A stretch of 64,000 bases of DNA, taken from contig OZ176055.1 in the NCBI GenBank assembly GCA_964247055.1, positions 4,650,001-4,714,000 of the forward strand, in the 5' to 3' direction. Every line of letters starts with the position of its first letter. Positions within the stretch are counted from its first letter, which is position 1. The DNA comes from Paragordius varius (Eukaryota > Animalia > Nematomorpha). Positions 9,951 to 57,448 of the stretch are shown piece by piece. The translations under genes were made by a program, and so were the position numbers. The notes beneath the pieces were generated by a model, which ran no database searches, had not been told where the DNA came from, and saw only the letters and a list, made by a program, of their open reading frames with translations.

Positions 9951-17042
<7,092 letters not shown>

Positions 17043-20701: not shown

Positions 20702-23700
20702 TATCATATAAATATTAACATAAACCAAGAATTATCATATATATTAGACATAAAACATGTATTTAATAACCTTTCCAATCAAACCCTGGGCTACACTATC
20801 ACAAAGATTAACAGCAACATCGGCAGCCACATTTTTGCCGATCAAATGTTGTTTGAGTGAATCCAAAATTGGCGTTATATCTGATTGCTCAATACATTTA
20901 TTCGTTGCAACATTGTTTATTAAAGACTTCAATTTAGTGGAGAAAAAACTGCCAAAGCTACATTTGTTCCTTTATAAGTTATAAAAATAAAGGTATAGGT
21001 AAAAGTATATAATAATTACCATTTTATAAAATAGTACAAAATAAAGTTTTTATAAAATACCCATTATCATTTGTTGTGTTATGATCCTTGGATGGCTTTA
21101 TATTTGCAGTTTTAATAATATCAAGATCATCAGAATCATTTTCGGATTGCCAAGACAATGCGTCATCATTTATATCTATTGCTCTCAAATCGCCTTTCAT
21201 AAGTCCAATAACTTCCTACATGTATTAAAAAGAGCATAAATATAAAATATGGACTACACATTTAAAAAAATAAATAAAAAATAAAATATATATTGAATGT
21301 ATTAACTATGTTTGATTAATTTATGATTTAACATTATTAATATAAAAATAATTTACTAAATATAAGTTTTAAATATATAAAAGATATTATAAAAAATAAC
21401 CTTTCCCCCAAATTTTTCAGAAGTTGTAATGTCAGTGGTATTGTTTGAAATATTATCTAAATTTAAACATTCCATTTATAATTCCACTTTGTAAAGCAAT
21501 GAAACAAGTATAAAATTATGTAAAAAGGTTTTCACCTTTAAGTCGCTAATTCTTTATAATAAAATATTTTATTTCAATAACAGCCAATATTAAATTTCCG
21601 CTTAAAAATATATATCCTATGACATTTTAATATAATTTTAATCTATTTTTTATTGATGTATCCTAAAAAAATACCCGGTTCAGAAAGCTTTTTGGGTTTA
21701 GAACTAAAATCCAAAAAATCTACGTCCTTCTCTGTCCCTTCGTTGTCCCATCGACGGGCTTCTTTTTTCTTCAAATTTTTACTGTAAGTGATAATATTAT
21801 TTATATGTTTTATTTATTAATGCTATTATATTAATTGTTAATATTTTTCCATATTTTCTTATTTTTACTCACAAATATTTAAAATAATATTGCTTTGGTA
21901 TGATTTTTGTATGCAAAAAACGCTTTTCTAGAACATAATGATCTTAAAAATGCCTTTTTAATATTTAGTGAATGTTTAAAAAATATTTTTTTGTTATTTA
22001 CAAAAGTGTCGAGATTGGAAAAATTTTAAATTCAAAAAAGCACAAAAGAAAGTACTCATTTTTATTAGCAGCGACAGTTTTCTTTCGCATAGCCGGCATT
22101 TGATTTGATGGACTGCTTAAACCATGTCCGATTTGTAGGGAAGGTGGTAAGATTGGGATTTCGCTTTCAAAATGTTTGGGCTTAGCGATTCCATTAGGGA
22201 CCAGGGGTACTTTTATATGCTCTACATAATTGTGTACATATTTTATTGATAAAAAAACTATTTTATGACTAGCATTAGTTTTAATCAAAAGCGTTAAATA
22301 ATTATATCCAAATTATAAAAAATTATTTTGCAACAAATTAAAAGGTGATTGAGGCAAATAAATATATAACTAAAAATAAATTATAATATGTGTGATGATC
22401 CGTTACTTAATAAACAAATAAATTAATAATTGGTTTAACAGGGAAAATTTTCATTGCAAAGTTGTTAGAGAATTTACTTAAAATGACTGATAATAGAGTA
22501 AGATTAATAAATGATTATCACGAAAAAACAAAAGAAAAACATGATTAGCACATGGTGGAAAAAATATGATACAAATACACCAAATACGACCCAAATGAAT
22601 CCTTTCTGTTGTATCTACTTACACATCTAACAAATATTTTAACCATGTGCGAATCATTTTTTATTTGGATATTCATTTGTTTTTTTCGTGATAATCAATT
22701 ATTAATCTTATGATATCAATTATATATAATTATTCAATTTATAAAGATATTGAATTTATTATAGTCTAAACAGTAATGGTGGTCAAGATTTAAACCAAAA
22801 ACAGTTATATCTTCAATTTCACAAATTTTTTAAAAAAATTATTTTGTCAAAAAATTTGGTTCTATTTCCAGTGCTTTTGGTTTAACTTTTAACATAAACA
22901 GTCAAATTATTGTCTGCCAAAAATATTTATAAAATAAAGGCTTCTCTAAAAAATATTTTAAACAATCAAAAAGTATTATTGCTTCCAAATGGGAAAATTC
23001 CAAAAACTTTTGGTTTAATTATCTAATGTCGTAAGTATATTGCATATTAAAGGGGATTTAAGCATATTTTTAAATATAATTATATAAATTTTATACAATA
23101 TATATAAATTATATATACATATATAAGTTGGTAATTAATAAATTAGTTAGGTAAAAAGGTTACAATAGGAAATGACCAAATAATTTAAATATTTAGGTAT
23201 AAACCTTTAACAACTTCGTTAATATCTTTTGAAGAATTTTTATTAGCATGCGATTTCTTTTTTTCTTTCTCATTTTTAACTTGCTGTGTCTGCTTATTTT
23301 GAATAAAACTTTCAATAGTTTTTTTCGATTTCTCTGACTGCTCAAAAGTACGCATTGGTTTAACAAAATCATTAGAAATCATATTAGAAATAGGCACGTA
23401 TCGCTTTTCGACATCTCTCCATACGTTTCCAAAATCTGCATCAAAATCAAAAGAGCCCATATAATTTTTCTAAAATAAATCTAACAATTACCTGCTTAAG
23501 GTCGTTTTTATATTTGTCACGAAATCTTAGTTGTATTTCATCAAGCAATTTATCCATGTAATTTAAAGACAATATTTTATTTGTTATCACAACAAATATT
23601 AATTCAAACTCATTATCCAATTTATAATTAAGGGCTAAATCCCCATTATAAAAAATTGGAGTGTGTTTGGCCTACGCATGAGAATAAAATAAACCGGAAT

Positions 23701-23826
23701 AAGGGCACTATGTATTAAGGAACAAATAGCAATTCGGAAATCCTGCCGATTTTGTAAAAACTTTGCAGTTTGCAGGGACCATAAAGCAATGCCACTGCTG
23801 GTAAATATTGTAAAAAAATCTAGCAT
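18173..23826 (-). CDS. SRPRA: Signal recognition particle receptor subunit alpha (multi-exon)
   Basis: N-terminus [16 protein letters not shown] and [12 protein letters not shown] (longin/SRX domain), KKEARRWD linker, [76 protein letters not shown]. Stop at 18173-18175. The listed ORF 21998-22288 contains an internal linker exon. Confidence 0.95.
20657..20699. repeat. (TA)n microsatellite in an SRPRA intron
   Basis: About 21 TA units. Confidence 0.95.
22499..22710. mobile_element. MITE-like inverted-repeat element in an SRPRA intron
   Basis: ~30-bp TIR taagattaataaatgattatcacgaaaaaa versus ttttttcgtgataatcaattattaatctta (1 mismatch), plus an inner pair atgattagcacatggt / accatgtgcgaatcat. 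TA at both outer ends. Confidence 0.7.
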
Positions 23827-23885
23827 ACGTATTGAGCGTCAAACGCGAAAATGCAAAACCAATCCGTTTAATATTTAAATTTTGA
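23827..23885. promoter_or_regulatory. Very compact bidirectional promoter region, SRPRA / SKI2
   Basis: Only 59 nt separate the two divergent ATGs (83 nt if SKI2 starts at 23910). The region is locally CpG-containing and has a CCAAT. Inferred from gene geometry. Confidence 0.55.
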
Positions 23886-25890
23886 ATGAGCTTGAAAAAT
23901 AATTCTAAAATGTTTATTTCAACTAACGGAGAATATCCAAATATATCTCCAAAAGGTTGTTTTAACTATGCAGTATATATATTTAATTGTTTAGCCCAAT
24001 ATTGATTTACCACCAATTATTACATTGCCCAAAGATAAGTTAAAACAATGCTTGAAAGACGTTCAACATAATTTACTCTTTAATTTAAACCCAAAAGCCA
24101 AGTTATTATAATTTAATTTACAGAATTTTGAAAAGCAACTCAAATTATTCCTCTCTTCTTGACTTTAGTGTACCAGATTGTAATAGTGTCATAAAAAAGG
24201 TTTACAACTTAAAAAACGGGAAAATCATTGGATTTGAAGAGGTAAGTTTTGTATAAAAATAAGGATATAATAAATGACAATATAACTATTCACAATAAAC
24301 ATGCGTCCTCGGAATTATCTAAAATAAGTAAAAAATAATTGTATTATTTAAGATTTTGAGTCACTTTTTTCCGATGCTATAGATTCGACATACGATTCTC
24401 TCCTAACCAATTATAAATTACCAGGTTTTGCTCCTTTTTTATCTCATAGAAATACATGAAACACATTTAACTCAAGGTATGAAAAATATGGATTTAACCA
24501 ATTCTAAGGCTGACGATGTTAATTTACCCGATGAGAGTTGTACTACAAGTATATAATTTAGCTAGAAAAATTGCAATATTCATTAATAATATTTTTTAAC
24601 CAAAAAATTAGAGTTTAAAAACGGTAGATTAGGAAATAATTTAGTTAGAATAATCATTGAAGTATTAAAATTTTAAGGTTTTAGTTGGATTGTCCAAGAG
24701 CATACATAGTTCTAGATCCTAGTATGGCGGTATCACTTTTTATGGTGCCATTAAGTTCTAGAAAAATAAAATTAATTTAAATAATTTTCTAGTATGATAT
24801 CGAAATTCTAAAAAATATGTAGTGTTTTTCAAATTTTTTACTGTTTATAGGCCAGAGGTTATATATCAATTGAAAAGATATTTAATCATATCAACACTGT
24901 GAGGCATGAAAAAGATATTTTTTAATTATAAACATAAATATATGTGGGAAACGGTAAAAGATATTATGGCCAAAAAATATAATATGACTAATTTTTAAAT
25001 ATAAGTATTCTAAATGGTAAAAATTTACTATGTAAGTTTTTTCATTCCATTGTTTAAACAAATTCAAAAGTCCAAATGCCACCTCTCCGCGGTGTTGGCT
25101 GGGGCATGAAAATGCGCTAACGACAAAGGCCAGTTTTCTAATAATATTTAAAATCATTAGTTGCACACAAGCATATGTTTTACGCAATATATCGCCTCAA
25201 TTATCCATGAAGCATAAATATTATGAATATGAATTTTGCGGAAAAACTCCGAATCCGGAGCCTGTTTTTACTCACCGACCTGCCTAAATCCTATTTTTAT
25301 AATTATTTGCCCTCTCATAAATCAATTTTTTAAATGTAAATGATTTATTTTGGCTACAAATGCACATGTATTATATGTGTTAAAAAGAAAAAGATTCTGT
25401 TACATTATTATATATATTTTTGAGACCACTAAATTTTTAATAATTTAATTGGGTTTTCATTATTATATTTTCCCCTTTAATAAATAGGAGATTTACCGGA
25501 CTCGAAACTAGATATTATAAGGCATAAGCCAAAGTCAGCTGTGGATCAAAGCCAAAAACGAAAATACAAGTGGGCCAAAGCAGTCGATTTAATTAATGAT
25601 GCTGATGAAATATCCAACTTTGAAGAAAAGTTAGATTATAAAAAATCATAAATAAACTTTTTAAGGGAATCAAAACCGTTTATGGTCCAATTCCTTTTCC
25701 TAAAAAAATTTTTTTCGTTAAAGATTTTGATTTCTGGTCATAAGACAACGTAAAAAATAAGCCAAAAAATGTAGATATATAGTTAAATGTTGTTTGTTAA
25801 CTGAAAAATTTTAAAAAATTATATATATATATTATCTATAAAATCGAAATTAAAAAATAAGGTAAACATGCAATAAAAACTTAAATGTAT

Positions 25891-25929
<39 letters not shown>

Positions 25930-28900
25930 TATTTTTAAACCTACGGTTGTTTTACAAAAATTAACCTGTCACCGTTTGGTACTAAAATGGATTCAGGATT
26001 GTTTTTAAAACCTATACAAGAATGGCTAATTAGCCCGTTTCTTTAAAATGGTTTCGGTTTTAATCCCTTTATATTTATGCATTCTTTTATGATGTTTCCC
26101 TTAATGTTTCAGATTACCAAATCTTGGGCATTCTTGGCCCTTCACATTAGACGCCTTCCAAAAGCATGCCATTGTCCACATCTCTCGCGGGAACAGTGTT
26201 TTAGTTGCAGCGCACACTTCTGCGGGGAAAACGGTCGTGGCTGAATACGCTATCGCTCTTGCAAAACGAAACAAAACTCGGTTTGTAAAAATTTAATGAA
26301 TGATTATTTTGTTCGCTAGAAACAATTGATTAAATAAAGAATTAATGATAAAAACTTAAGAGATGTTGTATAGCCAAAAAGTGTATTCATCAGGTAAAAC
26401 TTTTAATGAAAACTTTTTCCACAATAAAATCACCGCATTACATTAAGTAATAATATATATATAAAATAAAAATGGTTAACAAATTACAACCTGTTTTATG
26501 CTTAATTTTACATTTAGAGTATAACAAGAACTAAAATTATTTTTATAGCTCAGAAAGATATGTCGATTGTTTCATATATCGCCAAAACCCAAAAAAGATG
26601 ATATTTGTCGGCGCCAAGCTTATTTTTATTTGTTACAAAAATAATTTAAACACGATTTCTGATTGTAGCCTTTTACTATCATAATATTTCCTATCTTAAA
26701 CTCTTACGATTCAAGTAGTTTGATGATTTACTTAAATATATGACGCTAATTGTTTTGTTTAGTGTTGTTTACACATCACCCATAAAAGCTTTAAGCAATC
26801 AAAAATATCGGGATTTCAAGCAAAGATTTGGCGATGATATCGGTCTTATCACAGGTGACATTTATCTCAAAGCGAATGCATTTTGCCTTATTATGACGAC
26901 AGAAATTCTCAAAGTTATGTTATATACTCATGACGATCTCATTTCCGAACTTGAATGGGTCATTTTTGATGAGGTATACGTTTAATAGATAACCAAAAAT
27001 TCTATTTTATAAAATCGACTGCATAAAATTTATTTTAAAATAATGCTTTCAATATTTGTGTGAATCTTCAATACTTAACTCGATTCCTTTTATTTATATA
27101 TTCTATTAAACGGTACCATTTTTATTATATATTGTATTTTTCGCTTATTCGAATTCGACAATTGGCTAAAATACAATGACACTATATTTTATTAGGTTAG
27201 ATGTTATAAATCATATATGCCTGATTTTTTTTATTAATTTACATGAAATTAAAGAATGTTGCATTTTTTCTGTCTTTGCAAAGGTTCATTACATAAACGA
27301 TGAAGAAAGGGGTGTTGTATGGGAAGAGGTCTGTATTCTCCTGCCATCTCATGTCAAAATGATTTTTTTGAGCGCTACTGCCCCAAACGCATTAGAGTTT
27401 GCCGATTGGATAGGTTTTATACCGTTTAATTTCTTCAAATTATAAGGCTAAACGTAAAAATATTTTTTAAAAAGGACAGCCATACTTTTTTAAAGTTGAT
27501 TTTCTCTACAGTTAGGGTTTCAAAGGAATTGAAATATAAATAAATAACACTTTAATTATACATTCCACTTTTGTAAACATAGTTTTCATAGATTAAATAA
27601 GGTTCAAAAAAGTATAGATGTCTAAAAACAATGTTTTCATCATAGTCCCTCTACGTTTTAGACTATGTAATTTCTTAATGAATCTTTCATCTTTTCTAAA
27701 TATTAGGGTCCATTAAAAACAGACAAATTTACGTTATTTACACAACAAAACGTCCAGTTCCACTCGAACATTTTCTTTACATATCCAATTTGCCTGATCA
27801 AAAGCCCAAATTGATAGCGAAATTGCCAAAGAAAAGTATGCTGATATACCATTTACAATTTAATTTCACCCTTAAACAATTCAAATTCACCCTCAAATAA
27901 ATAATATGTTTTTTAAGATTATAAATTACCTATATTTTATATATTTTTTAAAAATAAAAATTTTGTTTTAAATTAAAATAATACTGAAAAAATAATAAAT
28001 TATACCATAAACATATATTTCATATTAATAATGAGTTATATAGTTTGAAAACACATAATTTATTTTTAGGGTGAATTTAAATTGTTCGAGGGTGAATTTG
28101 AATTGTTCAGGGGTGAATTTGAACTGTAAATGGTATATTCCAATTTTATATTTCAAATAACTTAATACTATTATATTGATGGTCTTTATAACAATGACTT
28201 CTTTTGAGTTACTGCCGGAAATATGATGTCGACATTAATATAATAACCAAATTTTCATATGTACTTAAAAAATTATATATTTGTTTTTTAGCAAACACTC
28301 ATTTATACCATTTTTGTTAGTTTTATATATTTTAACTATAAAATCAATCATATAGAAAAAGGTGGATTAAACCATGTGAACAATCACTTTAGTAAGGAAA
28401 TCGCCTTGAAAGAAGCAAATCATAACGAAAATAATTCTAGTACAGGCGATATAGCAGTCTCAGGTCGAACTTTTCTTTTAGTTGATTCCAACAATCAATT
28501 TTTAGGCGAAAATTATCGGGACGCCAAAACTAAATTGCAGGTTTTTTTACAATATTTAATTGTTAATGTTTAAAAAATTGTATAACAATTAATTTTAAAT
28601 TAATTATGCCATATGCAGTTTGTGTATTTTTTATATATAAAAATATAAAACATTGTGTTCCATTTTTAAAAACCTTGCATGATCAAATGAATATATTACT
28701 TGAAATTAAAGCCTTTTTTTAAAAATGTATTAAACATTTCAAAACTGATGACAATAAACTTTGATTTATGTCTGTCATTTTAAAAAGATGAATTTTATTT
28801 CTTTTAGGTAAGATAGGACATTACAAATTGGCATTTTAATTGTTAATGCTTCTGATAAATTCTGTTATTTTAGCATTAAAGATTTGATTTTTATAAATAA

Positions 28901-31900: not shown

Positions 31901-34900
31901 CTTTTATACATCTAAATTTACTTTTATCCATCCAGATTTATAATTTGATCGCATGTGCGATCTGGTTTTGATGGCCAGCAGAAAAACCAAAATAATTTTT
32001 GATTATTTTTATTAAAACTCAGTTTTATTACAAATAACTTAATCTAATTTTTAATTTTTTGTATCCATAATAATAGTTAAGACAAGGTATTATGCATTTA
32101 TTTTTGTGTATGCTATCCACTAGTTTGACAAATAAACTAAAGTAATATTTAGATCGTTTTTAAGAGTCCAATGAGTTTGCAAAAGATTGTCTTTCCAATA
32201 ACAAATTTTAAAGTCATGTTGCAAATTTAATTATTTGATTGCAGGCTTTAGACTGGAAGAATTGAAAAATGTGATGGAACGCATACAAGAACCCGAACCT
32301 TTCTTATGCAAACTTTGTTCAACTGATATTGATTTGTTTTACAAGACTTTTTGCGATTTCTATAATCTACAGCATAGTTTTATGGTACTTTGTCGTTTAG
32401 ATATGATGATATATTGATTGTATCAATTATATTTACTTTATATTTTATTACAGAACAAATTATTTTGCTATAAACGCCTATTTGAAATACTATGCATTGG
32501 TCGCGTTATCATATTTAAACTAATGCATTCAGATCTGCTAAATATGGATATGATAAACTCTAAAAATCCGAAACAAACTGAAAAAGCTCTTTCCCCCTTA
32601 TTGGCCAGTAATGATTAGTTTTGAATAATGCGAAACCAAGCTTTATTTTGATTCTTTTTTCTTGCAAAACGAAAATTATTTTTTATATATCCACCCAAAT
32701 TTTTAGAAGATTCTGAGTCAAAACAAAAGTCAAATAGTGCATATACATTATGTTTGGGTTTAATTCTCAAAACTAACCGGCATTTGAGTGTTCCCCATCT
32801 AAAGGTTATCTATATAAAACCTAAGAATATGTGCCAAAGAAATTTGGATCTCAATGCGTTCCTTAATGAGGGAACTTTAAATGTTGGACATCTCATAGGC
32901 CAGGGTTTATCTACTGGCACCGCAACAAACGATGCATTTAAAGATTTAATAGCCAGTCTAAATGATTATCTCACCATATTGGTTCAAACTGATCAATTTA
33001 TAAGGAGCAATTTTTTACCTCACATTCCACCAAACTCTATGAATGCCAAAATAAATAATGGTTAATATTATATATAGTTTGTCAATCTCAAAAACCAAAT
33101 TTATTAATAAAACTGGATTAATAAATGCAATTAAAAATTAATTGACGACGACCGGTTTTGTGAAACCGGAACCAATACCGAATCTCAATTTATAATCGAG
33201 TACTATGTATACAGCATTAACCCTGTTACATGGTTTTCCTCATTACTTCACATACTGGGTTGTTTTTATAAAAATAAATCAATGATTGATAATTTAAATG
33301 GTAATATTTTTAAGTGTTTTCTAGTTTTTTAAACATTTGTATTATAAATTTTAATTTGTGATAATGATTATATCTCTAAAATTCATTTATATATATTTTA
33401 AGCTCAGTTAATTGGAAACATTCATATTTATAATTTATATTTTATAGAATATCACGATAGGATTGGCATTTTAGAAATCAAAAACTTCCAAAACATAATC
33501 TACATTACTCATCTTAACTGCCAATTGTACAGTGATTCCATTTTACACCAATACAGAAATATAAAGACACGCTCATCATTAGCTTCTTTATCGATGGCGG
33601 GAAAATTCAATACTAATAATAACAATCCGACCTGCCTAACAAACCAAAATCAAACTGATCTCAATAGTGATTTTAACGCCTTTTTTCACTTTGTACCACC
33701 CATTCTTGAACGAATTAAATGTAAGTTTAAATATTTGACATTTTAGATTTTATTTTTATTTAAATATCATTTAAAGCCGATGTATTTTTTTTATCAAACC
33801 TTATAGTTTAAATTTAAAATTTTTATGTTATTATTAAAAAGATGATATCGCTTCCACAACATTAAATCAAGATACTAATTCCCTGTTCATATATGGGAGT
33901 GACAAAGCTATGGGCTTTAGAATTAAATCCAAAGCGCCACATAACTTTGGTTTGAATAGCAGATTGGATGAGATTCGAACATCCATATTATCTCCAACAG
34001 GTCGTTCATGTTTAATTTCAAATTTAACATTATATCTGTAGTTTTTGTAATTATTTCTAGGGTGTGATCTTACTGCTTAGGAAAGCAACCAGATAACATT
34101 TTTAAAGATAGGGCGTTATAGAAATTATTATAAAATAATGGTATACAATATATAAATAATTATATTCAATTTTAACAATTCATCCAATTTTAGTTAATTG
34201 TTATTAAAATTATTATGAATATATTTAAAACTCATTTTTTTTCTTCAATTTCGTTTTATTTTAATTAGTTGTAACGTATATTTCCGTAATCAATTATATG
34301 TTGGCCGATCTAAAGAGCATTATATTTCATCATAGATGTGAAATCTACATGTAGTACAGGAAATTCTGAAACTAAAATCATAAAAGTTGCCTCACATCAA
34401 TGGGAAATAGATTTGGAACTTGAAGAAATGCTCAAAACACTCAGCGCAAAAATTAGATTGGCTCGAGATTTTAGGTGTGTTAAATCGTGTCCGGCTTTGG
34501 TAATTATATTACAAATTTTGTTTATTATTTGTTGTTGTTGTTGTTGTTTGCTAAAGTCGATTCCGACTAATTGCAACATTGAAAAAATGGCTTCTCCATT
34601 CATTGCGATTTCCGGTTTTGGTGTTTAGGTCGGATAAGGATAGGTTGGTTTCTTTAAGGATGTTATCCATCCAACGAGTTCGTCTTCTCCCTCTTTTTCG
34701 GGCACCACTCACTTTCCCCAGCATCAGTGATTTTTCAAGTGAGCTGGATCTCATGATGTGCCCGAAGAAGGAGAGTTTTTGCCGTGTTAAGCTGCCAAGA
34801 AGTGACATTTCTGGGTTTATTTTATTTAGAATGGTGGTGTTTGAAACTTTGTCTGTCCATTTTGTTTGAAGAAGTTTTCTCCAAACCCATAATTCGAAAG

Positions 34901-37900
34901 AATTTATTAGACGTTCATCATATTTTTTCAGTGTCCAGCTTTCCCCCCCATACATGAATGTGGGGAAAACTGTAGCTTTGATTAATCTGATTTTGGTTTG
35001 TAGTTTAATGTCATGTGACATCCAAATCCTGTTATATTTAAAAGTTACTGCTTTAGCAATAGCAATTCTTCGCTTTATTTCAGGCGTAGAGTTGTTCTCA
35101 TTATTAATAATGCTACCTAAGTACGTGTAGCTGCTAACTGTTTCGATCTGGTTGCCGTTGAGGATTATTGGATTGGTTTGAGCCGGATTTATTTGCATGA
35201 CTTTTGTTTTTTTGAAATTGATATTTAATCCAAATTTATTGCATTCAGTTGTAAACACTTGCAAAGCTTGCGATAATGTGTCTAGACTGTCTGCGAATAA
35301 GACTGTATCATCCGCGTAGTGAACGGATGTAAGTAGGTTCCCACCTACGTTGATGCCGTAAGTTTGTGGGATATTTCTTATAATGCACTCCAGGTATGCG
35401 TTAAAAAGAATTGGTGATAAAACGCATCCTTGACGGAGGCCGACTTGTACCCTACATGGGTCAGATATACCGTATGGTGTGGATACTATAGCCGTGGAAT
35501 TTGAATAAATTGAAAATATGATTTTGATTAAATGTGTTGATACTCCGAGTTGTTTTAGAGCTTTCCGTAGTTTATTGTGCTGGGAATCAAATGCTTTGGA
35601 AAAATCGACAAAGCACATATGCAATTCTTTGTTAAATTCGATGTGTTTCTCGATTATCCACCTCATGTTACATATCATATCTCGGCATCCTCTACCTTTT
35701 CGAAAACCAGCCTGAATCGTGGATATTTCCGGGTCAAGAATGGAATTTAGACGAAATTGTATTATTTTTAGAAAAACTTTGGACACCTGGTTTATGAGCG
35801 CTATGGTGCGATAGTTGTCACACAGTTCTGGGTTACCCTTTTTTAAAATCGGAATCATAATGGATGTACACCAATCCTCAGGAATTTTTTCCATCTTAAA
35901 TATGATTTGAAAAAGTTTGGTGAGTATATCGATTGGAATGTATTTTATTATTTTAGTAGGGATGTCTTTGTGGCCCTCTGATTTACCGGTGCTAGAGTGT
36001 TTTATGGCGAGTTCCACTTCTTCTTTCATAATAGGTGGTTCTTTTTGTTTAGTAAGTTCGTTAATAGTTGGGGGGTTATTTACATTGTATAGTTTGTTTA
36101 TATGTTTGTGCCATAGTTTGCGAATTTCGTCTTTTTCAGTGACGATTGAGTTGTTGTCGTTTCTCATAGGTCCCTTATAAAAAACTTTTTTGTGTGGAAT
36201 AATATTGTTTGCATGGGCAAAGAGGTTTTGGTTATTTTTGGCGTCTGTTTCTAATTTTTCACATAGTTGGTCATAATACTTATTTGTGTCCTCTCTTGCA
36301 CTCTTCTGAAATTCACTGTTTAGTTGTTTGTATTTATCCCATTTGCATTTGGTTTTTGAGTCTCTACACTTTTCTGCGATCTCTAGACTTTTGGCTGACA
36401 ATTTCATTTTATTTTTATTGCGTTTGAGAGGCCGAATGAATTCGTCGGCTGTGTCTCGGCAGATTGTATATATATCGTTCCAAAAGAAGTTTATATCCAG
36501 ATAGTTTTCGGAATTATGATCAAGACAATCGAAACGATTTGATAAAGCGGTGCTAAACTTGTCGTCGATTGTATCATAATCTAATCTTGTTCTTGTGGGT
36601 TTGGATGTTTTAGGAAGTTGTAATTTAATTCGGAGTTTGGCGATCAATAGGTTGTGGTCGCTGTAGCAATCCGATCCTGGTAGGCATTTGACATTTTGAA
36701 ATGAACTTTTGTATTTTACCATACCTAATATGAAGTCAATCTGGTTACGGTATCTTTGACACGGGGAACGCCATGTGTATAGACGTCGTTTGGGCTGTTT
36801 AAAAAAGCTGTTTGCGACGAAGAAACGATGGTTAGCACAAAATTCAATCAATCTGTCTCCTCTCTCGTTTTTTAAGCCCAAGCCCATGCCGCCCGTCATA
36901 GGAGGTGTTTTGTCTGTTCCGATGATTGAATTAAAATCGCCTAAGATAAATATATCCTTTTTTGAAATTTGGGAAATCGCCAAGTCGAGATCGCTATAAA
37001 ATTTTTCACAGTCGTCATCGCTGTAAGAGGAGGTAGGTGCGTAAATTTGAAGGATAGTAATGGGTTGAGGGGTTGTATGCATGCACAAGTTAATTAAATT
37101 GTAATTTTATTATTGAGAGATTTTTATCAGCTAATTTTATAATACCCATATTTAAATAATTACTGTTGTAAGGACCGATACATCTTCCTTTTTTGTCTTT
37201 TAAGATTTCTTTAAGAGTTATAAGCCGTGGAAGCATTGTGTCTGTAAATCAGTTATTAAATTTATCCATCATTTAAAACATTGTTGCATCTGTTATTTGG
37301 ATTATAATTATTAGAAAACGGGTAATCTATTTAAGCAAATGTTCCTTTACAATTTAGACTACAACACATTTTGCAAATTTTGTGGCCGGTATGGACTATC
37401 AAACGAAAAAGAGCAAATTGGCAGAATTAGCGAAATCTCTTATGATTAAAACAACCATTATAGGCAATAGTACTTCGAACGAAGGTGGGAGTCTTTTGGA
37501 AAAAGCTGGTGGAAATATATCGATTGCAGATAATTATGAAGATATGCAGTTTCTCCCTGAATATCAACAACGAATCAAAGTATTTACATTTTTAGATTCA
37601 CATTTAATTTTGACAACTTTACGTATGAGATATATTTACAATTATATATTTATATTCATTAATAAACATTATTATACATCAACACGCCAATATTATGCAA
37701 ATTTATACCATATAAATAATATATATTTTTTGTGAATATTTACTAACTAATTAAATGGTTTGACACGCAATATTTATAGATTTTATATTTTTTAATTTTT
37801 ACTAAATTCACGCATGTAAATAACCAGACAAATAAAATTTACTTACACCGATTATCCCCATGTGAATTTTTTTATATTTACGTTTTATGCAGAGGGTAAA

Positions 37901-41364: not shown

Positions 41365-41427
41365 CAGGGCCATAAAATACATTTTGAGGGCTGTATGCGG
41401 TTCGTAGCCTCGGTTTGAGTACCAGTG
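41365..41427. mobile_element. hAT MITE remnant (3' end)
   Basis: agggccataaa...atgcgg...cggtttgagtaccagtg matches the right half of 55961-56154. Confidence 0.55.
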
Positions 41428-43360: not shown

Positions 43361-46300
43361 TTAACTGTAGTTACGACAATTCAATAGTTTTATAAAGGCT
43401 TGTTTGAAATGTACATTGGCAAGGGCATACATAAATGGATTCAAGGGACTGTTAAGATAGCATAACCAATATGTAAAAGCGTAAAAATGTGGATTTATAT
43501 AACAGGAATCACAAAAACCCCAAATTGTTTCCAAGATGTGGTAGGGTGTCCAACATAATACAAATGCTCCCATTATACATGTAATTGTCCGCAATGCCTT
43601 CTTTGCTTTAGTGTTCTTTTTACGCTTTTTCGCAGCACTAATTAGCGCCTTGGTTTTTGCAGCCGTGTACATGTTGGATTTCAATCCACCTCCCGGCCAA
43701 ATAGAACTAATGGCACTACTCCCCAATTTAAGGCTCCCCAATTTAGAAGAGGATGACGAGGTAGATGTTGAATGTTTTATGGTTGATCCTTTCTGTTGTG
43801 ATTTTGAAGGATCTGGCACATCAGATGATTTTTCTTTAGCGTTTAAGGAATCATTGTTTTCCGTATTACAAAAGTTTGTTTTTTCGTTAGTACTTTCACT
43901 TAATTGATCATTCAGCAAATCGGTTTCGTTTATTGATTCGCTCTTTCCCTCATCTTGTGCATCTGCAATCTCATCGGCTAAATCTTCGTCATAACTTATT
44001 TCCTGGTAGTTATGCTTTATTTTTTTATTACTTATTTTAATTTTTACGGAACGTGTTGGTTTAAAATTCTTTGAAAGCGATTTCACGTCCGGTAATGCTG
44101 GTAGTAATTTTTTACTAGAAGTCCTGATCCAAGTTGATTTGTCAGTTATTAAATTGTCTTTTGTTTTTTCCTTTTCAGTCATATATTCATTATTCTCTGA
44201 CGATATAGGTTTATCTTCACTTTGATTTGAATATTGAGTAACAACTTCTTTTGGATGATCTCCCCGTTTACTATTTTGATCGTGAATATTATTTGTCAAG
44301 GTCGTATTTTTATCAAGTAAAGTATCATTGGGTACTATTAATAAAGATTGGCAGTTAGATGCATTTTTCAAAATTTCTCGATTTAAATGATATCCCGTAG
44401 TGGCTTTTGGTTGAGTATTAAAATCAAATGAGTTTCTTATATTTGGGTTAAATGCATTATTACTTAAATTATTTTTTTGTAAATCTATCAATTCATCTCT
44501 ATCAATTTCTTCATGCATTTGGTCGTTGCCGTATGGGGGCTCGTATGCATAGGGGAAATAGGAAAACGGTTTGAACTCAATATTTAATGGGTTTAAACCG
44601 CACGAATGTGCTATAGATCTTTCATTCCTTAAAGTATTAGCTTCAGTATGTTTTTTATCTTGAAGTACATTATTTAACATATCATCATCATATGGATATG
44701 GAAAATCCATACCAAAAGAAGATGTTTTAGGTATTCTGTAATTCTTTTTATTGGTTTCATGCAAAAGCTTATGTGAAAATTTGCGCAACAAATGTGGATT
44801 TGGAAGGGCTCGGCGCTTTTTTTCCCTCGGTATAAGAGGTTGGCCAACTTGGTTAATTATTTTACGATCGGTAGATGAATTCTTTATCCCGCTATTAGGA
44901 ATTTGGGAAATAGAACTTGTTTGCGGATTAGATATTTGTAAATTCCTTTCGTGTGTGATTTTATCACCAAAAAATGAGTTTGTATTTGTCAGCCTTTGTG
45001 TACTAATAAAACTTTTGTGGCCAGGAGTTTCTAAGTTTTTAAATATATTTTTATCATTTTCTTTGTTAATTTCTACCTCATTGGCTATATTTAATGGTGA
45101 ATCCGTCATAATATTACTTGTTTTACCTTCTACCACTTTATTTTGTGACGTACAATCTATAAATTCGTTCATTGATTCATGATTTTTTTGATTATCATTG
45201 AGATCCCTAGGATCTTCCCGTGATGGTGTCTCTAATTTTGTTTTACCAAATTTATTGTTTGACTTTTTAGAGTTAATTATGGGTGCAAGTGATTTAAACC
45301 TTATATGTTTTGCATGAACTGATTTTAAACCAGTTAAATTAGGCAAATTATTGTCCCTGGTTTTACCATTCTTATTTATACCGATGGAACTTTGTGCCAC
45401 ATTTTTGAGAACAGAAGTTAGTTTGTTGGATGAAGTTGGTTTATTAAGAGGATGTGATTCGCTGATTGGCTCAAGGAAACTTCGATGAACCACTTTTTTG
45501 GGTAAACTTGGTTTGTGTCCTATTTCGGTATCATCGTCATCATTATCGAAATCATCTTTATGGTCGTCGGTATCTATATCTTCTGGCTTCCCGAGTAACC
45601 TTGTAAGTTTTTCAGTTTGTTTTTCATAACGTCGCTCTTCATCAGAACTTCGCTTTTTGTCAGTGGCGCCACTCATTCCATGAATAGGGAAAGCTGTCTT
45701 TGCTGTTGTAAATATAATTTGGTTTCCTTTTAGTAGAGTGCTTTTAAGTTTTCGATTGTCACTTTTTTTAGCCATAGTGTATGCCACACGATAGATCCCA
45801 TAGTACAATATTAATAATATAACAAGTGACACCCAAAAATATGCGAATATTAGAGCTGTGTTGAATATTTTATTGTTTCTGAATGGTACATAACATTCAT
45901 GTAAACCACGCGTTCGTTTTCCCGTTATAAGTGGCCAGCCTACGATGGAAGTGAAAAATATCCCAAAGGAAAGGATCCATACAAAACATATAAGAAATTT
46001 GAGTTTAGCTTTAGTTCTCCATATCCTATACTTAGCGGGAATCCGAACTGAACAAAATCGGTCGATAGTTATGAGTAGAACCGTATATTGCGAAACTAAA
46101 CAAGCTGTGTAATCGGTAGTTAGCCAGAGATCACAGAGTAATGGCCCCAGGGGCCAAAAATCTAAAAGTAGATAAAGCGTGTAAAATGGCATGGAAAAAA
46201 GTCCGATTAATAAATCAGAAGCAGCTAGTGACACGATGCAATAATTATTGGGCTGACGGATACTAGGCTCTCTTAGAAATGCCAAAATTACCATAATGTT

Positions 46301-46567
46301 CCCGATAACTGTTACCAAGCATAAAATTCCAACTAGGAGCCAGATTACGATTTCTTGCCACAATAGAAAAGGCTTGTGGCCTATGGTAGCATTAATGGTA
46401 GTGGGCAAACCAAGGGTCGTAGCACCCATCAATAGCGAGCTATTGAAAATTAATTTAGAATTATGTGAATTATTATTGTTCATTGATGAGGATAAAGGAT
46501 GTGTGAGATCCAGTGAAGTAAAATTTATAATATATTTTTTGGTTGATGCTAGCAAATTATTCGACAT
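43361..46567 (-). CDS. mAChR-B: Muscarinic acetylcholine receptor, B-type, intronless CDS, 1068 aa
   Basis: GN in TM1, SLAASDL in TM2, LCDLWLTTDYTACLVSQYTVLLITIDRFCSV (D3.32, DRF), CWTPYH in TM6, YWLCYLNSPLNPFMY in TM7. The third intracellular loop is roughly 720 aa. Which Met is the start is uncertain. Confidence 0.9.
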   Translation of the reverse strand: MSNNLLASTKKYIINFTSLDLTHPLSSSMNNNNSHNSKLIFNSSLLMGATTLGLPTTINATIGHKPFLLWQEIVIWLLVGILCLVTVIGNIMVILAFLREPSIRQPNNYCIVSLAASDLLIGLFSMPFYTLYLLLDFWPLGPLLCDLWLTTDYTACLVSQYTVLLITIDRFCSVRIPAKYRIWRTKAKLKFLICFVWILSFGIFFTSIVGWPLITGKRTRGLHECYVPFRNNKIFNTALIFAYFWVSLVILLILYYGIYRVAYTMAKKSDNRKLKSTLLKGNQIIFTTAKTAFPIHGMSGATDKKRSSDEERRYEKQTEKLTRLLGKPEDIDTDDHKDDFDNDDDDTEIGHKPSLPKKVVHRSFLEPISESHPLNKPTSSNKLTSVLKNVAQSSIGINKNGKTRDNNLPNLTGLKSVHAKHIRFKSLAPIINSKKSNNKFGKTKLETPSREDPRDLNDNQKNHESMNEFIDCTSQNKVVEGKTSNIMTDSPLNIANEVEINKENDKNIFKNLETPGHKSFISTQRLTNTNSFFGDKITHERNLQISNPQTSSISQIPNSGIKNSSTDRKIINQVGQPLIPREKKRRALPNPHLLRKFSHKLLHETNKKNYRIPKTSSFGMDFPYPYDDDMLNNVLQDKKHTEANTLRNERSIAHSCGLNPLNIEFKPFSYFPYAYEPPYGNDQMHEEIDRDELIDLQKNNLSNNAFNPNIRNSFDFNTQPKATTGYHLNREILKNASNCQSLLIVPNDTLLDKNTTLTNNIHDQNSKRGDHPKEVVTQYSNQSEDKPISSENNEYMTEKEKTKDNLITDKSTWIRTSSKKLLPALPDVKSLSKNFKPTRSVKIKISNKKIKHNYQEISYDEDLADEIADAQDEGKSESINETDLLNDQLSESTNEKTNFCNTENNDSLNAKEKSSDVPDPSKSQQKGSTIKHSTSTSSSSSKLGSLKLGSSAISSIWPGGGLKSNMYTAAKTKALISAAKKRKKNTKAKKALRTITCIMGAFVLCWTPYHILETIWGFCDSCYINPHFYAFTYWLCYLNSPLNPFMYALANVHFKQAFIKLLNCRNYS

Positions 46568-49277: not shown

Positions 49278-49280
<3 letters not shown>
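48014..49280. mobile_element. Foldback (long palindromic) element, ~1.27 kb, within TA-rich flanks
   Basis: Left arm 48016-48611 is an imperfect reverse complement of right arm 48667-49278 (termini ctgtgtgcaaaaa / tttttgcacacag). The spacer is 55 nt. (TA)n flanks both sides. Confidence 0.9.

Positions 49281-49321
<41 letters not shown>
49279..49321. repeat. (TA)n microsatellite
   Basis: About 21 TA units directly after the foldback element. Confidence 0.95.
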
Positions 49322-49323
<2 letters not shown>

Positions 49324-51820: not shown

Positions 51821-52586
51821 ATATACTAGTTTTCGGTTATTTTTTAAAGAATATAAAAACATAAAAACCAAGTTAAACATTTTTTAAGGTTCAAATTTTT
51901 CATATGCCTACATCGCTCAAGCTCACTCTTTAAATATTTTTTTGGAAATAAGCTCATTTAAATTTTTAAATTTATAAATTTTTTTAAACCGAAAAATAAA
52001 TAATAATTTACCGAAATTTTTTAAAAGGGTTAGGCAAAATAATTAGCCAAAGAGTGGACAATATAAAACGATTTTTAAATCATTTACCCACCCCAAATTA
52101 GGGTATAATAAAATCAATTTTGTTATTACATTTTATATATTTCAAAAAAGAAATCCAAGGATTCTATAAAATTTGACATATTTAAAACCCAATAATATAA
52201 TTAGAATGATATTGTATTGGTTATATCTGTTTTTGGCCATTTATGTAATTATATCAATTATTTTTGTAAATTTCATAACGGTTACACATATTACTAAATC
52301 AGCAAAATTTTGAGTTATCCAAGCGAACACCTACTAGTTGAATTCTTACCTATGCTTGATTTCAGGTCACCAAATATCTTAAAATACTTGTAATGTTGTG
52401 ATGCCTATAAAAAGTGATATTTTTTTCCACAATAGCAGAGGTATCAATCATTAAATATGAAAGGACCTGTTTATTTTTAAATAGTGCACAAAATCGCAGG
52501 GTCATTAATATCCGATTAAATAAATAAACTGGAAAAAAAATTGGCATTTTCATAGTCCTCTTGCACGACTATAAATTGTTCTATAA

Positions 52587-54024
52587 CAGGGGTGGCCAAC
52601 CTTTTTTTCCCACGGGCTACTTTTTTTTGGAGAATATTTCACGCGGGCACGTATAAGATTCAACCACTTCAATACAATAACTCAAATATATTCATTCTAT
52701 TTACGGAATGCTAGCCCAGCCCATTTTAAATTAGATATTATGAAAAATGATTATTTTTGAGTAGTTATTTTTATATTAAAATACATAAATAATGTTAATT
52801 CAGAAATCTGGTTGCCACCATCAGTACAAATACTAAAAAATTTACATCATTCAATTTATTAAAGTACTGTACATCTTGCGACAGATTTTAGATGATTAAA
52901 GTAAAAAATGGATTTGTAGCTCTTGGTAAAGATATTTTATGGATTACTGCATACCAGGTTTTATGAACATATGTTATAAGATAGTAAATTTCATCAAATC
53001 GAAAAGAGAGTGGTGCCGCACTTTTATATAGAATTAGTTTTGACAGAGTAAACTAGTAAAAACAGATGTAAAATGATTAAGTCGTGCTGCATTTTAGAAA
53101 GTTTTATACAATATCACTATAAATATATCTATTTTACAGCAGAAAAATTATTCATATCTACAGGTCTAAAATCGCTTTGATCTTGCTTTTTAATGCGATA
53201 AAAAAATTGCGCATTGAGTGTTTCTAGCATTTAAATGATCTTTCAATAGCTTGATTGATTTGCAAATATCCTACTATTTTTTATAGTTCATGTGAAGCGT
53301 AATTGTTTTTGGACATTTGCTTTTTTAGGTAAAGCCGCGGTGGAGTTGCATCAAAGTACATTTTTCATCCTTCATTATAAAAAAATATTCTTCCCATTCC
53401 TTTCTAAAACGATATTTTAGCATTTTTTTTGGCTTTAATCATTAATTATACTTAAATATAATTAAAGGTTACCAGCTTCTAATTCAAACTACTAAGGAAA
53501 TTACATATGATATAAAGTTGAAATAAAATTTATATGATTAAATAAATATATAAACACTTGGATACACTAATTTCAATGCTCCTATTCAAACTGGAATTTG
53601 AGGGATCCCATGCCTCTTTTAAATCATACATTTCAAAAAATATAAAATAAAATGAAATTGCAAAAGTTTGCAAAAAAATATAAAAGAATGCATTGAAAAA
53701 TAATTGGTTTATTTTATGGATAAATTTGAAGGGAAAAATTTAGCTCTCATGACAATAAAAATAATGGAATATAAACCACTTGTTTATATGTTAGATGTGA
53801 TTAGAATAACAAATAAGCTTTAGTTTTAGCATTAGTATCAAATAAACACGATAGTTTGCAAAAATAATGTAAAGAAAAATGGCATCGAAGTAGTTTGACA
53901 TGGAAATTTTTTTATAAACTAAACTTTATCTAGTTATTTTGGCTTATTTATATATTTGTTTAAAAAATGAGGCGACGCTTCAAAATTTCGCGGTCACGAA
54001 GGGTCGACCGTTTGGCCACCCCTC
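52587..54024 (-). mobile_element. Internally deleted, decayed hAT transposon with Buster/SPIN-like transposase remnants
   Basis: TIRs caggggtggccaac / tttggccacccctc. Minus-strand peptide remnants occur in the expected order: EWEEYFF (53399) and CNSTAALPKKANV (53350-53311), LSFRFDE (~53010-52990), SICTDGG (~52834-52813). Frameshifts and stops lie between them. Flanks ttctataa / ctctagat. Confidence 0.75.
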
Positions 54025-54185
54025 CTCTAGATAGAACAATCGAGGTATTATGCGGATTTTTTTGATTGGAATCATTGCAAAAATTTGTTTTATATATCAT
54101 AAACTAACTAGAGGTTTATTATTAACACTTCTTTAACCTTTTTTTTATTGGAGTACATAGGATATATTCACAGGCTAAATTTGAA

Positions 54186-54556
54186 TATACCATTTACAGT
54201 TCAATTTCAACAATTTAAATTCACCCTTGAACAATTCAAATTCACCCTTGAACAATTCAAATTCACCCTCGAACAATTCAAATTCACCCTCAAATAAAAT
54301 ATATGTTTTTTAAGATTAAAAATTACCTATATTTTATATATTTTTCAAAAATAAAAGTTTTGTTTTAAAATAAAATAATACTGAAAAAATAATAAACTAT
54401 ACCATAAACATATACTTCATATTAATAATGAATTATACTAGTCCGAAAACACATAATTTATTTTTAGGGTGAATTTGAATTGTTCGAAGGTGAATTTGAA
54501 TTGTTCGAGGGTGAATTTGAGTTGTTCAAGGGTGAATTTGAACTGTAAATGGTATA
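54186..54556. mobile_element. TIR element with 21-bp subterminal tandem repeats (family copy 2)
   Basis: Ends tataccatttacagttcaa / ttgaactgtaaatggtata. About four 21-bp units on the left and three to four inverted units on the right. Core shared with 27845-28137. Confidence 0.85.
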
Positions 54557-55283
54557 TATTGCTACGAAAGGTATTTTAGTGTAATATTGCATTAATGTAT
54601 ACAATACATATTAATAGTTGGATTTTTTACATTTCTAGAGTCAAGTTGGAAATCTCTTTATTCCAAAATACACAAAGCATTACTAAAAGCATCAATTAAT
54701 GATAGTTTGCTGACAAAACAAAGACTGCATATTTTTCAATTATATCATGATTTTTTAAGACGTTTCATTTTATATCCGTTATGGTTAAAAAAAACTGACC
54801 TAGGGCGAGTTTAATATAACTTAAAAAGTATTTATGATGATATCTTTGGATTGCCCAATATACAAATGGTAATCACAAACAAATTATCTTCAATTTGTAA
54901 CGGAAAAATTTTATAAATGGTGGATGCATTACGATTCTAGTTAACTTTAAATTTTTACCGATTTTTAAAATTATTAAACCTGCTTCTTATTTCAAATGGA
55001 GTATCTAAATTATAAGGTATCAGAAAACCTTTCTAATTATATTTGTTTAATTATCCTATAGTCAAACTATTATGATGTTTAAGACATCAATTATAAAAAA
55101 TAACCAGAGAACACTTTTTTAAATGTGTAAATATTTTAAATATATAATTTGATAAAATCCTTTAATTATTGGGCAGATATAATTCTTTATAATAACAGTA
55201 GGATATAGAACAATGTATTTGATACGTTAATAATATCCCATATATATAGTTACTCATAATGGTACTTAAAAAGGTAGACACAT

Positions 55284-57448
55284 ATGATTGAAAAACTTAC
55301 ACCTGTACCCGGGGAAAAAGATTGTAGAATTAATAGCTATATTGATCGGGTAGTTCCAATATAATATTTAGCATGAAAGATATAAAGCTGAGGCCAAGGA
55401 AAGTGAAAGTGATATAGTTTTTATCGGTGACTCTTTGATAGAGCATCTACAACAAACTGAGGTATTTTTTAAATTAAAATTACAGATTTGGGATGTTTTT
55501 AGCCAAATGCATGCCTTAAATTTTGGGATGAGTGGAGACAAAACGCAAAATGTCTTATGGCGCTTACAAAACGGCGAACTAGCTTTTGAAGATTATAAAC
55601 CTAAGGTTTTTTATAATTATATAAATACAAATCTAAAATTCCTACGATAGCGTTGGTCTTTAACGTTATAATTAAAAGTTTTTTTCCCATAATAATCAGA
55701 GCTTTCTTTTGCCGAAAATATTCTTGTTAATTTTTTTCTATTATCATACAACTTTTGTATTTTTATACACGCTATTACATCTTGTAACCTAAACTAACCT
55801 AATGGAAACTAACCCCTAAATTTTTTGGATATAAGATATATTATTAGTTGAGTTTTATAACATATAGATAATTCATTCTGTTAGAATATAAAAATTAAAC
55901 ATGGTAGAGTGGTTACTGCGTTATTATGCTTTGTCTGCTTGAGTATGTGACGGTTAAAACCAGTGGTACTTTTAAAATTTTTAAAGGGCCATAAAAATAT
56001 TATTGAAGGGCCATAATACCGGTTAAAATGATTATAGCTGTTTGGCACATTTGCAGATATTTATGTTCAAAATAAGTACATCGATTTTTTTTCAAATAAT
56101 TTAGGGCCATAAAGGCATTTTGCATGCGGCCCGTGGGCCGCGGTTTGAGTACCAGTTTAAACCCTGAATGCGTCATGATTTTTTTATCCAAACAATTTTA
56201 TCTTTTAGGTTTTTGTTCTCCTCATCGGAACTAATAACGAAGAAAATACTGATGATATTGTCGATAGCATAAATGATATCGTCAATTTGATCCATCAAAT
56301 TATTCCATCCGCCTATATATTAATATTGGTAAATTGTGATCATTTTTTAAAATTCTACTATTACTTATTGGATTAATCAGATTGGGCGCCTAAATTCTGT
56401 CAAATATATTTATATGGTTAAATTCCAATATAAATGAGTTTCTCACTTGTCAAAAATAATATTAGTCTGTCCGATAATGCAGTCATTCATGGTTATCACT
56501 AGTCAATTTATACCACAAATATAAATATATGTAGTCCATTTATAACTCAAAAACAGAATTTGATAATTATACTTTCATTCATAATATTGATACAAATTAT
56601 TGACATACAAATTTACATTTTTATATGTAAATTTTGGAAAGTTTATTAAGGATTTATATCTGGTGATAAATATTAGGTTGAAAAGACTTCTCCGATTAAT
56701 ATTTAAATTTACAGTTGTGCTCCAATTCAGACCTAACCCAATTTTAATAGATTTATTCTTTCAAAACCATTTCCGTAACCAAAACATCCAAATTATCAAA
56801 TTCTTAGTGCAATATAAATTTTTTGTAATATTATTATTACATATTATTTTATATAATTTTTTTTAAAGATTTCATTAAAAGTAGCAGATGTATGACACGG
56901 CCTTTATTTTTATTTTTTTGCGGCTAATTATTTAAAATGTAGATTAAAAATATGAAATTATAATTGGACCATAAATTTAACTGTATAAAATTAATGAATT
57001 AAATTTTTTATAAATATTAATTTTTTCATATATTTTACCATTATAAAAAATTAAAACTCTTTAATCGTTTTAGAAATTATTTCCCAAAGGTCTTTACCCT
57101 TGTCCCGAGCGGGAAAAAATAGGCGTTATTAACAAGCTTCTAGCACAACGTTTCGGGACATTTAATGACACACTAATACAAGCTGTTGCCAATAATTCTT
57201 TACAACATAACCAAATTACTGTAGCTAATCAACAGCATTTCAAACATGGAGACCAATATAAATCTCAACAAATTCAACTTTTAGATTTGGATCCCGGTTT
57301 TGTTCAACCAGATGGTCGCATCAGCCATCTCGATATGTACGATTATTTGCATCTCACAAAACGTGGTTATGAAAAAGCGTTTGGTCCTTTGGTAGAGCTT
57401 TTGAAGTCATTATTGGAAAATGAGTCTCCTCCCGATACCCAAAACTGA
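55284..57448 (+). CDS. PAFAH1B2/3: Platelet-activating factor acetylhydrolase IB catalytic subunit (SGNH hydrolase)
   Basis: Exons 55284-55349, 55372-55461, 55486-~55604, ~56209-56327, ~57074-57448. Motifs: DIVFIGDSL, HALNFGMSGDKTQNVLWRLQNGEL, LIGTNN, DMYDYLHLT. The Ser/Asp/His triad is present. Confidence 0.9.
55961..56154. mobile_element. hAT MITE in a PAFAH1B intron
   Basis: Left cagtggtactttt, right gcggtttgagtacca (terminal bases eroded). Flanks gttaaaac / gtttaaac. Confidence 0.65.

Follow-up and report, generated by a model that had tools for sequence, protein, structure and literature searches.

Predicted introns of about 22 nucleotides cluster at the 5′ ends of genes in the horsehair worm Paragordius varius

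Introduction

Dicyemid mesozoans have introns of about 26 bp, and in Paramecium stop-free introns whose length is a multiple of three (3n) are depleted. For Schistosoma mansoni, Berriman et al. (2009) are reported to have described an 'unusual intron size distribution', and its 5′ introns are reportedly small. According to a general eukaryotic rule, first or 5′ introns exceed all others in length (PMC4040987), a rule that Bradnam and Korf (2008) reportedly described as well. Among worms, the flatworm Gyrodactylus salaris is the closest described system: its intron lengths show modes at ~32 and ~58 bp, of which the shorter is prevalent at ordinal positions 1-2 and the longer takes over from position 3 (Hahn et al. 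2014, PMC4040987). Tapeworms have bimodal intron lengths according to Tsai et al. (2013), as cited in PMC4040987; S. mansoni is without a bimodal distribution (PMC4040987). Genome-wide tiny introns of about 25 nucleotides (nt) are reported for Paramecium in PMC8997360. Here we describe a class of micro-introns with a modal length of 22 nt in the horsehair worm Paragordius varius (Nematomorpha), which were noticed in a 64,000-nt stretch of DNA (assembly GCA_964247055.1, contig OZ176055.1, positions 4,650,001 to 4,714,000 of the forward strand). This stretch is referred to as the window, and coordinates given without a contig name are positions within it.

Results

A preliminary description of the window had listed nine micro-introns of 22-25 nt, located in the SRPRA, SKI2 and PAF-AH genes. 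All nine were found, with GT..AG ends, where that description had placed them (22 nt in five cases, single introns of 23 and 24 nt, and two of 25 nt). They lie, as claimed, within ~570 nt of the respective ATG, the last one ending 563 nt after the start codon of SKI2. It was also correct that no intron further downstream is shorter than 40 nt, since the models for SRPRA, SKI2, PAF-AH and the Na,K-ATPase alpha gene ATP1A yield lengths of 49-983 nt plus one intron that bears a long interspersed nuclear element (LINE), and that ATP1A, where none of 16 introns is micro, is an exception to the pattern. Within the first 600 nt of coding sequence (CDS) the window contains 9 micro-introns and 6 others, and beyond this point 0 and ~41, respectively (Fisher p = 6.6e-7). 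The generalization that all micro-introns are promoter-proximal holds for these nine introns and is not a rule for the genome as a whole, as distal micro-introns are present in myosin genes (see below).

The distribution along genes was then determined for the 110-Mb assembly by a six-frame Pfam profile search with 12 families, each spanning a whole protein or an N-terminal domain. Cpn60_TCP1, Myosin_head, HSP70, Kinesin, Actin, Aldedh, tRNA-synt_1, SNF2, Ras and Proteasome were the first ten, and HSP90 and Myosin_tail_1 were searched after them; the sampled families represent housekeeping genes. Matches covered one exon at a time, and intron length was taken from coordinates as the DNA gap between profile-consecutive matches, corrected for profile overlap, and this was the sole type of estimate for the HSP70, Ras, proteasome, SNF2, tRNA-synthetase, HSP90 and myosin-tail genes as well as for most kinesin genes. 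In this coordinate-only test 168 introns were resolved. Twelve of them did not exceed 32 nt, and the shortest of the others had 46 nt. Up to ~600 nt of the estimated CDS, micro-introns accounted for 11 of 71 introns, and beyond for 1 of 97 (p = 3.7e-4). The HSP90 and Myosin_tail_1 families contributed ~15 more distal introns, also from coordinates only, and there was no micro-intron among these.

A second set was analysed at the DNA level and comprised ~220 kb around 34 genes. Exon-chaining was anchored on profile matches, and the resulting models were curated to 86 introns in 25 genes; to be counted, an intron had to have profile anchors or clear motifs on its flanks. The proportion of micro-introns amounted to 10/15 (67%) for CDS positions 0-300 nt, 6/19 (32%) from 300 to 600 nt, 2/23 (9%) from 600 to 1200 nt and 5/29 (17%) beyond 1200 nt. 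Taken together, 16 of 34 proximal and 7 of 52 distal introns were micro (Fisher test of 16/18 versus 7/45, p = 0.001). When introns were compared within one and the same gene, the micro-intron resided upstream of the ordinary introns in 10 of 11 cases. In every gene with a recognizable start codon, intron 1 opens the run of micro-introns, and the run is completed no more than 563 nt from the ATG. The short mode thus prevails at the first ordinal positions, and other introns prevail later. An even spread of micro-introns along genes had been set beforehand as the refuting outcome; what was seen in both sets is the position dependence that the preliminary description had proposed.

Individual genes, compared with familiar protein sequences, illustrate the pattern. 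A Rab gene of less than 700 nt (C5:5361113-5361799) carries introns of 21, 22, 22 and 22 nt, which split the P-loop, WDTAGQE, YDVT and NKID motifs at the junctions GVGKS|SLLLRF, LAIW|DTAGEERF, GAIL|VYDVT and NKIDK|. Micro-introns of 23, 23, 23 and 21 nt are found in an Arp4-like gene and of 27, 28 and 36 nt in a CCT3-like gene. Other CCT genes have micro-introns of 25 plus 26 nt, of 24 nt and of 29 nt, and two kinesin genes contain pairs of 27 plus 22 nt and of 22 plus 24 nt. The Rab gene also has a candidate fifth intron of 39 nt, a length that would fall into the otherwise empty gap of 37-43 nt.

Judged from sequence and homology, the micro segments are genuine spliceosomal GT-AG introns and form a discrete class. 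The 36 curated micro-introns range from 21 to 36 nt with a mode at 22 nt (12/36) and an A+T content of about 81%. Every one of them starts with GT and ends with AG, and T occupies position -3 in 25/36. The ends follow the patterns 5′ GT[A/T][A/T].T and 3′ T.AG, with a T-rich 3′ part. A YTNAY motif, whose A mostly lies at a distance of 6-10 nt from the 3′ end, is present in 26/36, although at 81% A+T such a motif is often expected by chance. Removal of the micro-introns restores conserved motifs and yields an open frame colinear with homologues in the Rab, CCT, Arp4-like, kinesin, SRPRA, PAF-AH and myosin genes. The reading frame is shifted by 27 of the 36, and in-frame stops are present in 8 of the 9 that are 3n. 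The class is clearly set apart in size: no intron between 36 and 44 nt occurs in the gene models and none between 32 and 46 nt in the coordinate-only estimates. Ordinary introns, residing in the same genes, run from 44 nt up to kilobases and include a second short cluster of roughly 50-90 nt, which is present at all gene positions. The genome thus seems to possess two separate minimal intron sizes.

Length and position are related within the micro class. Introns of up to 26 nt are found 25 times in proximal and once in distal position, while those of 27-36 nt are equally divided with five each (p = 0.003), and the median length is 22.5 nt for proximal and 31.5 nt for distal micro-introns (p = 0.01). 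Ordinary introns, on the other hand, do not exhibit any length gradient along genes (Spearman rho -0.08, p = 0.33); their median amounts to about 490 nt up to CDS position 300 and to 289-384 nt beyond. The 5′ effect is therefore specific to the micro class and does not reflect general shrinkage. A simple gradient of deletion bias near promoters, as brought forward in the preliminary description, predicts shorter ordinary introns at the 5′ end, and this is not what the data show.

In the window, the SRPRA gene is encoded on the minus strand. Exon 1 (23695..23826) begins with MLDFFTIF at the ATG at 23826, which was chosen by the ab initio model and which we take to specify the canonical SR-alpha N-terminus. 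Intron 1 (23672..23694, 23 nt, GT..AG) has a CTCAT motif near its 3′ end, and its removal restores the frame. Intron 2 (23470..23491, 22 nt) is flanked by exons that match the Pfam family SRP-alpha_N, exon 2 at positions 22-77 and exon 3 at 87-166. The first ordinary intron is intron 3 (22222..23204, 983 nt), which starts 622 nt after the ATG. Exon-chaining free of anchors recovers both micro-introns with 23 and 22 nt and gives 983, 274, 218, 185, 91, 268, 336, 454, 88 and 537 nt for the introns that follow.

SKI2 is transcribed in the opposite direction, on the plus strand, such that the two genes are arranged head to head (23826-23886) with 59 nt between their start codons. This leaves hardly any space for two 5′ untranslated regions and a shared promoter. 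Exon 1 of SKI2 (23886..23972) starts at an ATG at position 23886 that was deduced from the open frame. Open-frame logic likewise places intron 1 (23973..23994, 22 nt), for which there is no profile support, intron 2 (24102..24123, 22 nt) and intron 4 (24328..24352, 25 nt). For intron 2 the ab initio model preferred a 67-nt alternative; the 22-nt version retains an 'SSLLDF..VP' stretch, which presumably resembles that in human SKIV2L. Intron 3 (24242..24263, 22 nt) is supported by alignment of its junction with a foreign open reading frame (ORF) of the Ski2_N type, whereby ...KIIGFEE|... was aligned over ...HIIGYQEAIVQDPNMAANN in a single pairwise alignment. Intron 5 (24425..24449, 25 nt) contains a CTCAT motif, is also predicted by the ab initio model and closes the run 563 nt after the ATG. 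It is followed by the first ordinary intron, intron 6, of about 940 nt (24549..25487, boundaries approximate).

Splicing of all five micro-introns creates a continuous frame of 182 codons from the ATG at 23886. The identical rule applied to 102 non-coding stretches of equal length gave 152 codons at most and a median of 61.5. The open frame is what supports four of the five SKI2 micro-introns, i.e., all except intron 3, because Pfam is blind to these short, divergent exons: a Pfam search with the six short 5′ exons gave no match. A word search with a SKI2 exon for the orthologous locus of a related worm returned only relatives with up to 70% identity. The two relatives that were examined are compact genes of unrelated organisms with 43-54% G+C, and they were used for one N-terminal alignment.

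The third gene had been named PAFAH1B in the preliminary description. This is correct insofar as it is a PAF-AH Ib gene, and should be specified to the catalytic alpha subunit, not LIS1. It is located on the plus strand and starts with exon 1 (55284..55349, ATG at 55284). Intron 1 (55350..55371, 22 nt) precedes an exon that lacks an in-frame ATG and has a stop codon just upstream. Intron 2 (55462..55485) has 24 nt and is 3n and free of in-frame stops. It was assessed by structure numbering on 3dt6_A, where exon 2 corresponds to residues 27-56 and exon 3 to residues 57-90. As the two exons are exactly contiguous on this structure, the eight codons of the 24-nt segment are without counterpart in the homologue. 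Exon-chaining returned the two micro-introns with 22 and 24 nt and thereafter introns with 603 and 745 nt, the 603-nt intron 3 (55606..56208) being the first ordinary one. An NCBIfam search with the PAF-AH exons did not give any match. ATP1A (10039..16388, plus strand) has introns of 49-821 nt, the first of which is located at least 342 nt into the CDS.

The window has a G+C content of 25-35% and contains animal genes for a LINE reverse transcriptase, a single-exon rhodopsin-type receptor, SRPRA, SKI2, two Na,K-ATPase alpha subunits and the PAF-AH Ib catalytic subunit. An intact-looking LINE ORF of 845 amino acids, comprising endonuclease and reverse transcriptase, is situated on the minus strand within an SKI2 intron (34551-37088), and antisense frames of this element gave rise to false SKI2 exons in the exon-chaining model. 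The receptor, a member of the rhodopsin family with 1068 amino acids encoded by one exon (43361-46567, minus strand), matches 7tm_1 in two separate stretches, an indication of a very long inserted loop. Two near-identical open frames of 171 amino acids lie 2.8 kb apart on the plus strand (59052-59564 and 61846-62358) and are a tandem duplicate or a repeated element. A short tandem repeat of ~21-22 nt with a unit like GGTGAATTTGAATTGTTCGAA occurs upstream of PAF-AH (54468-54545) and also in an SKI2 intron (28059-28157).

Discussion

As an explanation we favour, if tentatively and without claiming that it is probable, a lower size limit for splicing that is graded and depends on position in the transcript. 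The spliceosome would be able to remove micro-introns anywhere in a transcript, with the smallest well-spliced size being lower near its 5′ end. Pairing of very close splice sites might be aided there by the cap-binding complex, by a promoter-proximal state of the polymerase carboxy-terminal domain (CTD) or of chromatin, or by the early-elongating polymerase. Introns of up to 26 nt would then hardly be tolerated outside the 5′ region; at greater distances, micro-introns would be rare and mostly 27-34 nt long, and a size valley at ~37-43 nt would separate the micro mode from the ordinary minimal mode of ~50-90 nt. This explanation is favoured because it is the sole one that accounts both for the contrast of length by position and for the missing gradient among ordinary introns. 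The position-dependent splicing mode put forward in the preliminary description survives in this graded form, with a 25:1 proximal-to-distal distribution for introns of up to 26 nt and 5:5 for those of 27-36 nt, while its strict cap-proximal form fails.

Several observations weigh against the graded limit. One comes from the verified introns of 22-34 nt that reside about 0.6-2.1 kb into the CDS of three myosin genes. A myosin-I-like gene on the minus strand of contig C5 has introns of 32, 22 and 27 nt, and its exons match Myosin_head at positions 314-411 and 413-447. On the structure 4byf_A (myosin-Ic) the exons around the 22- and 27-nt introns correspond to residues 429-462, 464-491 and 492-532 and are contiguous. 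The 22-nt intron (C5:4359065-4359086) signifies that a 5′ context is not strictly required even at the shortest size. In a paralogue on contig C6 (C6:8567024-8578003) the usual layout is reversed: the first introns are long, with 332 and 630 nt, and introns of 34, 33 and 31 nt are grouped in the last part of the motor domain, at CDS positions of ~1.7-2.1 kb; the 33-nt intron is flanked by Pfam positions 558-591 and about 594-630. In a third myosin gene, introns of 625 and 110 nt precede a 28-nt intron located ~600 nt into the CDS. A nested or antisense gene that might provide a second promoter was looked for beside the distal myosin micro-introns, and none was seen. The six verified micro-introns of the C5 and C6 genes, at CDS positions of ~1.1-2.1 kb and at a genomic distance of kilobases from the start, argue against the earlier proposal that proximity to cap or promoter is a requirement. 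Moreover, all distal micro-introns stem from these three myosin genes, such that few independent events stand behind the contrast of length by position. Many 5′ introns are not micro, including those of actins, one CCT gene and ATP1A. Further points concern the data themselves: genome-wide CDS positions are estimates from Pfam profile coordinates and family offsets, distance from the ATG stands in for distance from the cap, short exons between micro-introns are under-detected, and splice sites were called from sequence and homology. Without anchors the ab initio model is unreliable, and in several genes it placed spurious exons upstream. Two micro-introns predicted ab initio, at profile position 266 in an actin-family gene and at position 553 in the C6 myosin, proved false upon a Pfam check and paralogue comparison.

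The main rival assumes that splicing is blind to position and that introns are pushed towards minimal size if they lie no more than ~600 nt from the start site, be it by local deletion bias resulting from transcription-associated damage and open chromatin, by selection against transposon insertions and bulk, or by both. Each collapsed intron would bring the next one into the zone, so that runs arise from intron 1. This matches the observation that runs do start at intron 1 and stop abruptly within ~600 nt of the ATG, and that, once a long intron has broken a run, later introns are almost never micro even if they are located early in the CDS. Long introns indeed carry LINE and repeat insertions, and the distal introns of 22-34 nt speak for splicing that does not need a particular position. 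However, ordinary introns up to CDS position 300 are not reduced in length relative to others and intermediate sizes in transit are not seen, introns of 61-73 nt are located inside the supposed zone in some CCT and actin genes, and no reason is given for distal micro-introns exceeding proximal ones in length. We consider this collapse possible but rather unlikely. Both the graded limit and the collapse are compatible with dependence on distance along the pre-mRNA, and sequence alone cannot separate the two.

Selection on length for visibility of retained introns to nonsense-mediated decay, by which 3n introns and especially stop-free ones would be avoided, is improbable. The statement in the preliminary description that eight of the nine window micro-introns are not 3n is correct as a count, and such an outcome is no more than expected by chance (P = 0.14). 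In the independent set 8 of 27 micro-introns are 3n (p = 0.84) and overall 9 of 36 (p = 0.38), so the argument from avoidance of 3n lengths is not upheld. Stop-free introns make up 1 of 9 among the 3n and 11 of 27 among the non-3n micro-introns, which points in the direction of such selection without reaching significance (p = 0.22). Note that stop-free 3n micro-introns escape detection, which biases the test, and that the excess of lengths of the type 1 mod 3 is merely due to the modal length of 22 nt, which is itself 1 mod 3.

It is very improbable that the segments are not introns at all, but assembly insertions, products of programmed DNA elimination, short coding insertions or ribosomal frameshifting sites. 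The segment at 55462-55485, being 3n and stop-free, could in principle be translated. The uniform GT..AG ends of all 36, the T-rich 3′ end and the narrow length peak are at odds with such explanations, as are the frame shifts and in-frame stops reported above, the interruption of the P-loop, WDTAGQE and other invariant motifs and the lack of corresponding residues in homologues at these sites. A small-sample accident in three genes, with micro-introns in truth evenly spread, is hardly credible: the window offered three genes only, with ATP1A as an exception, and distal micro-introns do exist, but independent families gave p = 3.7e-4 and p = 0.001 and the micro-intron lay upstream in 10 of 11 within-gene comparisons.

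A bolder version of the position-dependent limit is conceivable, if somewhat doubtful. P. varius may have a second mode of intron definition, in which introns of ~21-26 nt, the shortest modal class known in any animal, would be handled only within ~600 nt of the transcription start, introns beyond having to measure at least ~27 nt or the ordinary 50 nt and above. Position would set the minimum via the cap-binding complex or early elongation.

In an intron of 22 nt, U1 and U2 components lack the space to bind side by side as usual. Routine use of introns of this size by an animal, mostly at one end of its genes, represents a natural experiment on the lower size limit of splicing, which also bears on the coupling of splicing to capping and early transcription. 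There may be practical consequences as well. With gene finders and completeness tools, an assumed minimum intron length of ~40 nt would lead to broken 5′ ends in many housekeeping genes of this genome, and this could inflate counts of 'missing' genes in horsehair worms. The Gordionus paper gives a BUSCO completeness of 71.6%.

The preliminary description had considered the pattern an undescribed feature. For this lineage that assessment stands within the literature searched, where no paper linked Nematomorpha with intron size. A similar pattern has, however, been published for G. salaris (PMC4040987). Both animals have two discrete modes of small introns beside long ones, and the short mode comes first. 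They differ in the modes themselves, which are 22 nt and roughly 50-90 nt in P. varius and ~32 and ~58 bp in G. salaris, and in the behaviour of average length, which falls with ordinal position in the flatworm whereas ordinary introns show no gradient here. Runs of up to five micro-introns and a limit at ~600 nt were not described for G. salaris. As the two lineages, Ecdysozoa and Lophotrochozoa, are distant, convergence is the more likely relation. New in the present analysis are the genome-wide statistics, the exceptions, the contrast of size by position, the missing gradient among ordinary introns and the negative result for 3n lengths.

Tapeworms and, if the description mentioned at the outset is accurate, S. 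mansoni are likewise parasitic worms with a distinct class of very short introns, the modes of which lie above 30 bp. Paramecium and the dicyemids remove spliceosomal introns of 20-30 nt efficiently, so that splicing at this size is mechanistically feasible. In those organisms tiny introns make up nearly the whole complement irrespective of position, whereas in P. varius the tiny ones are a minority class at gene starts and share their genes with introns of kilobases. In contrast to Paramecium, depletion of stop-free 3n introns is undetectable here, though such cases escape detection. In line with the general eukaryotic rule, intron length in P. varius depends on ordinal position. For the micro class the sign is opposite: first introns are often the shortest possible, and the first-intron-longest rule is thus reversed in a lineage far from the flatworms with their similar published pattern.

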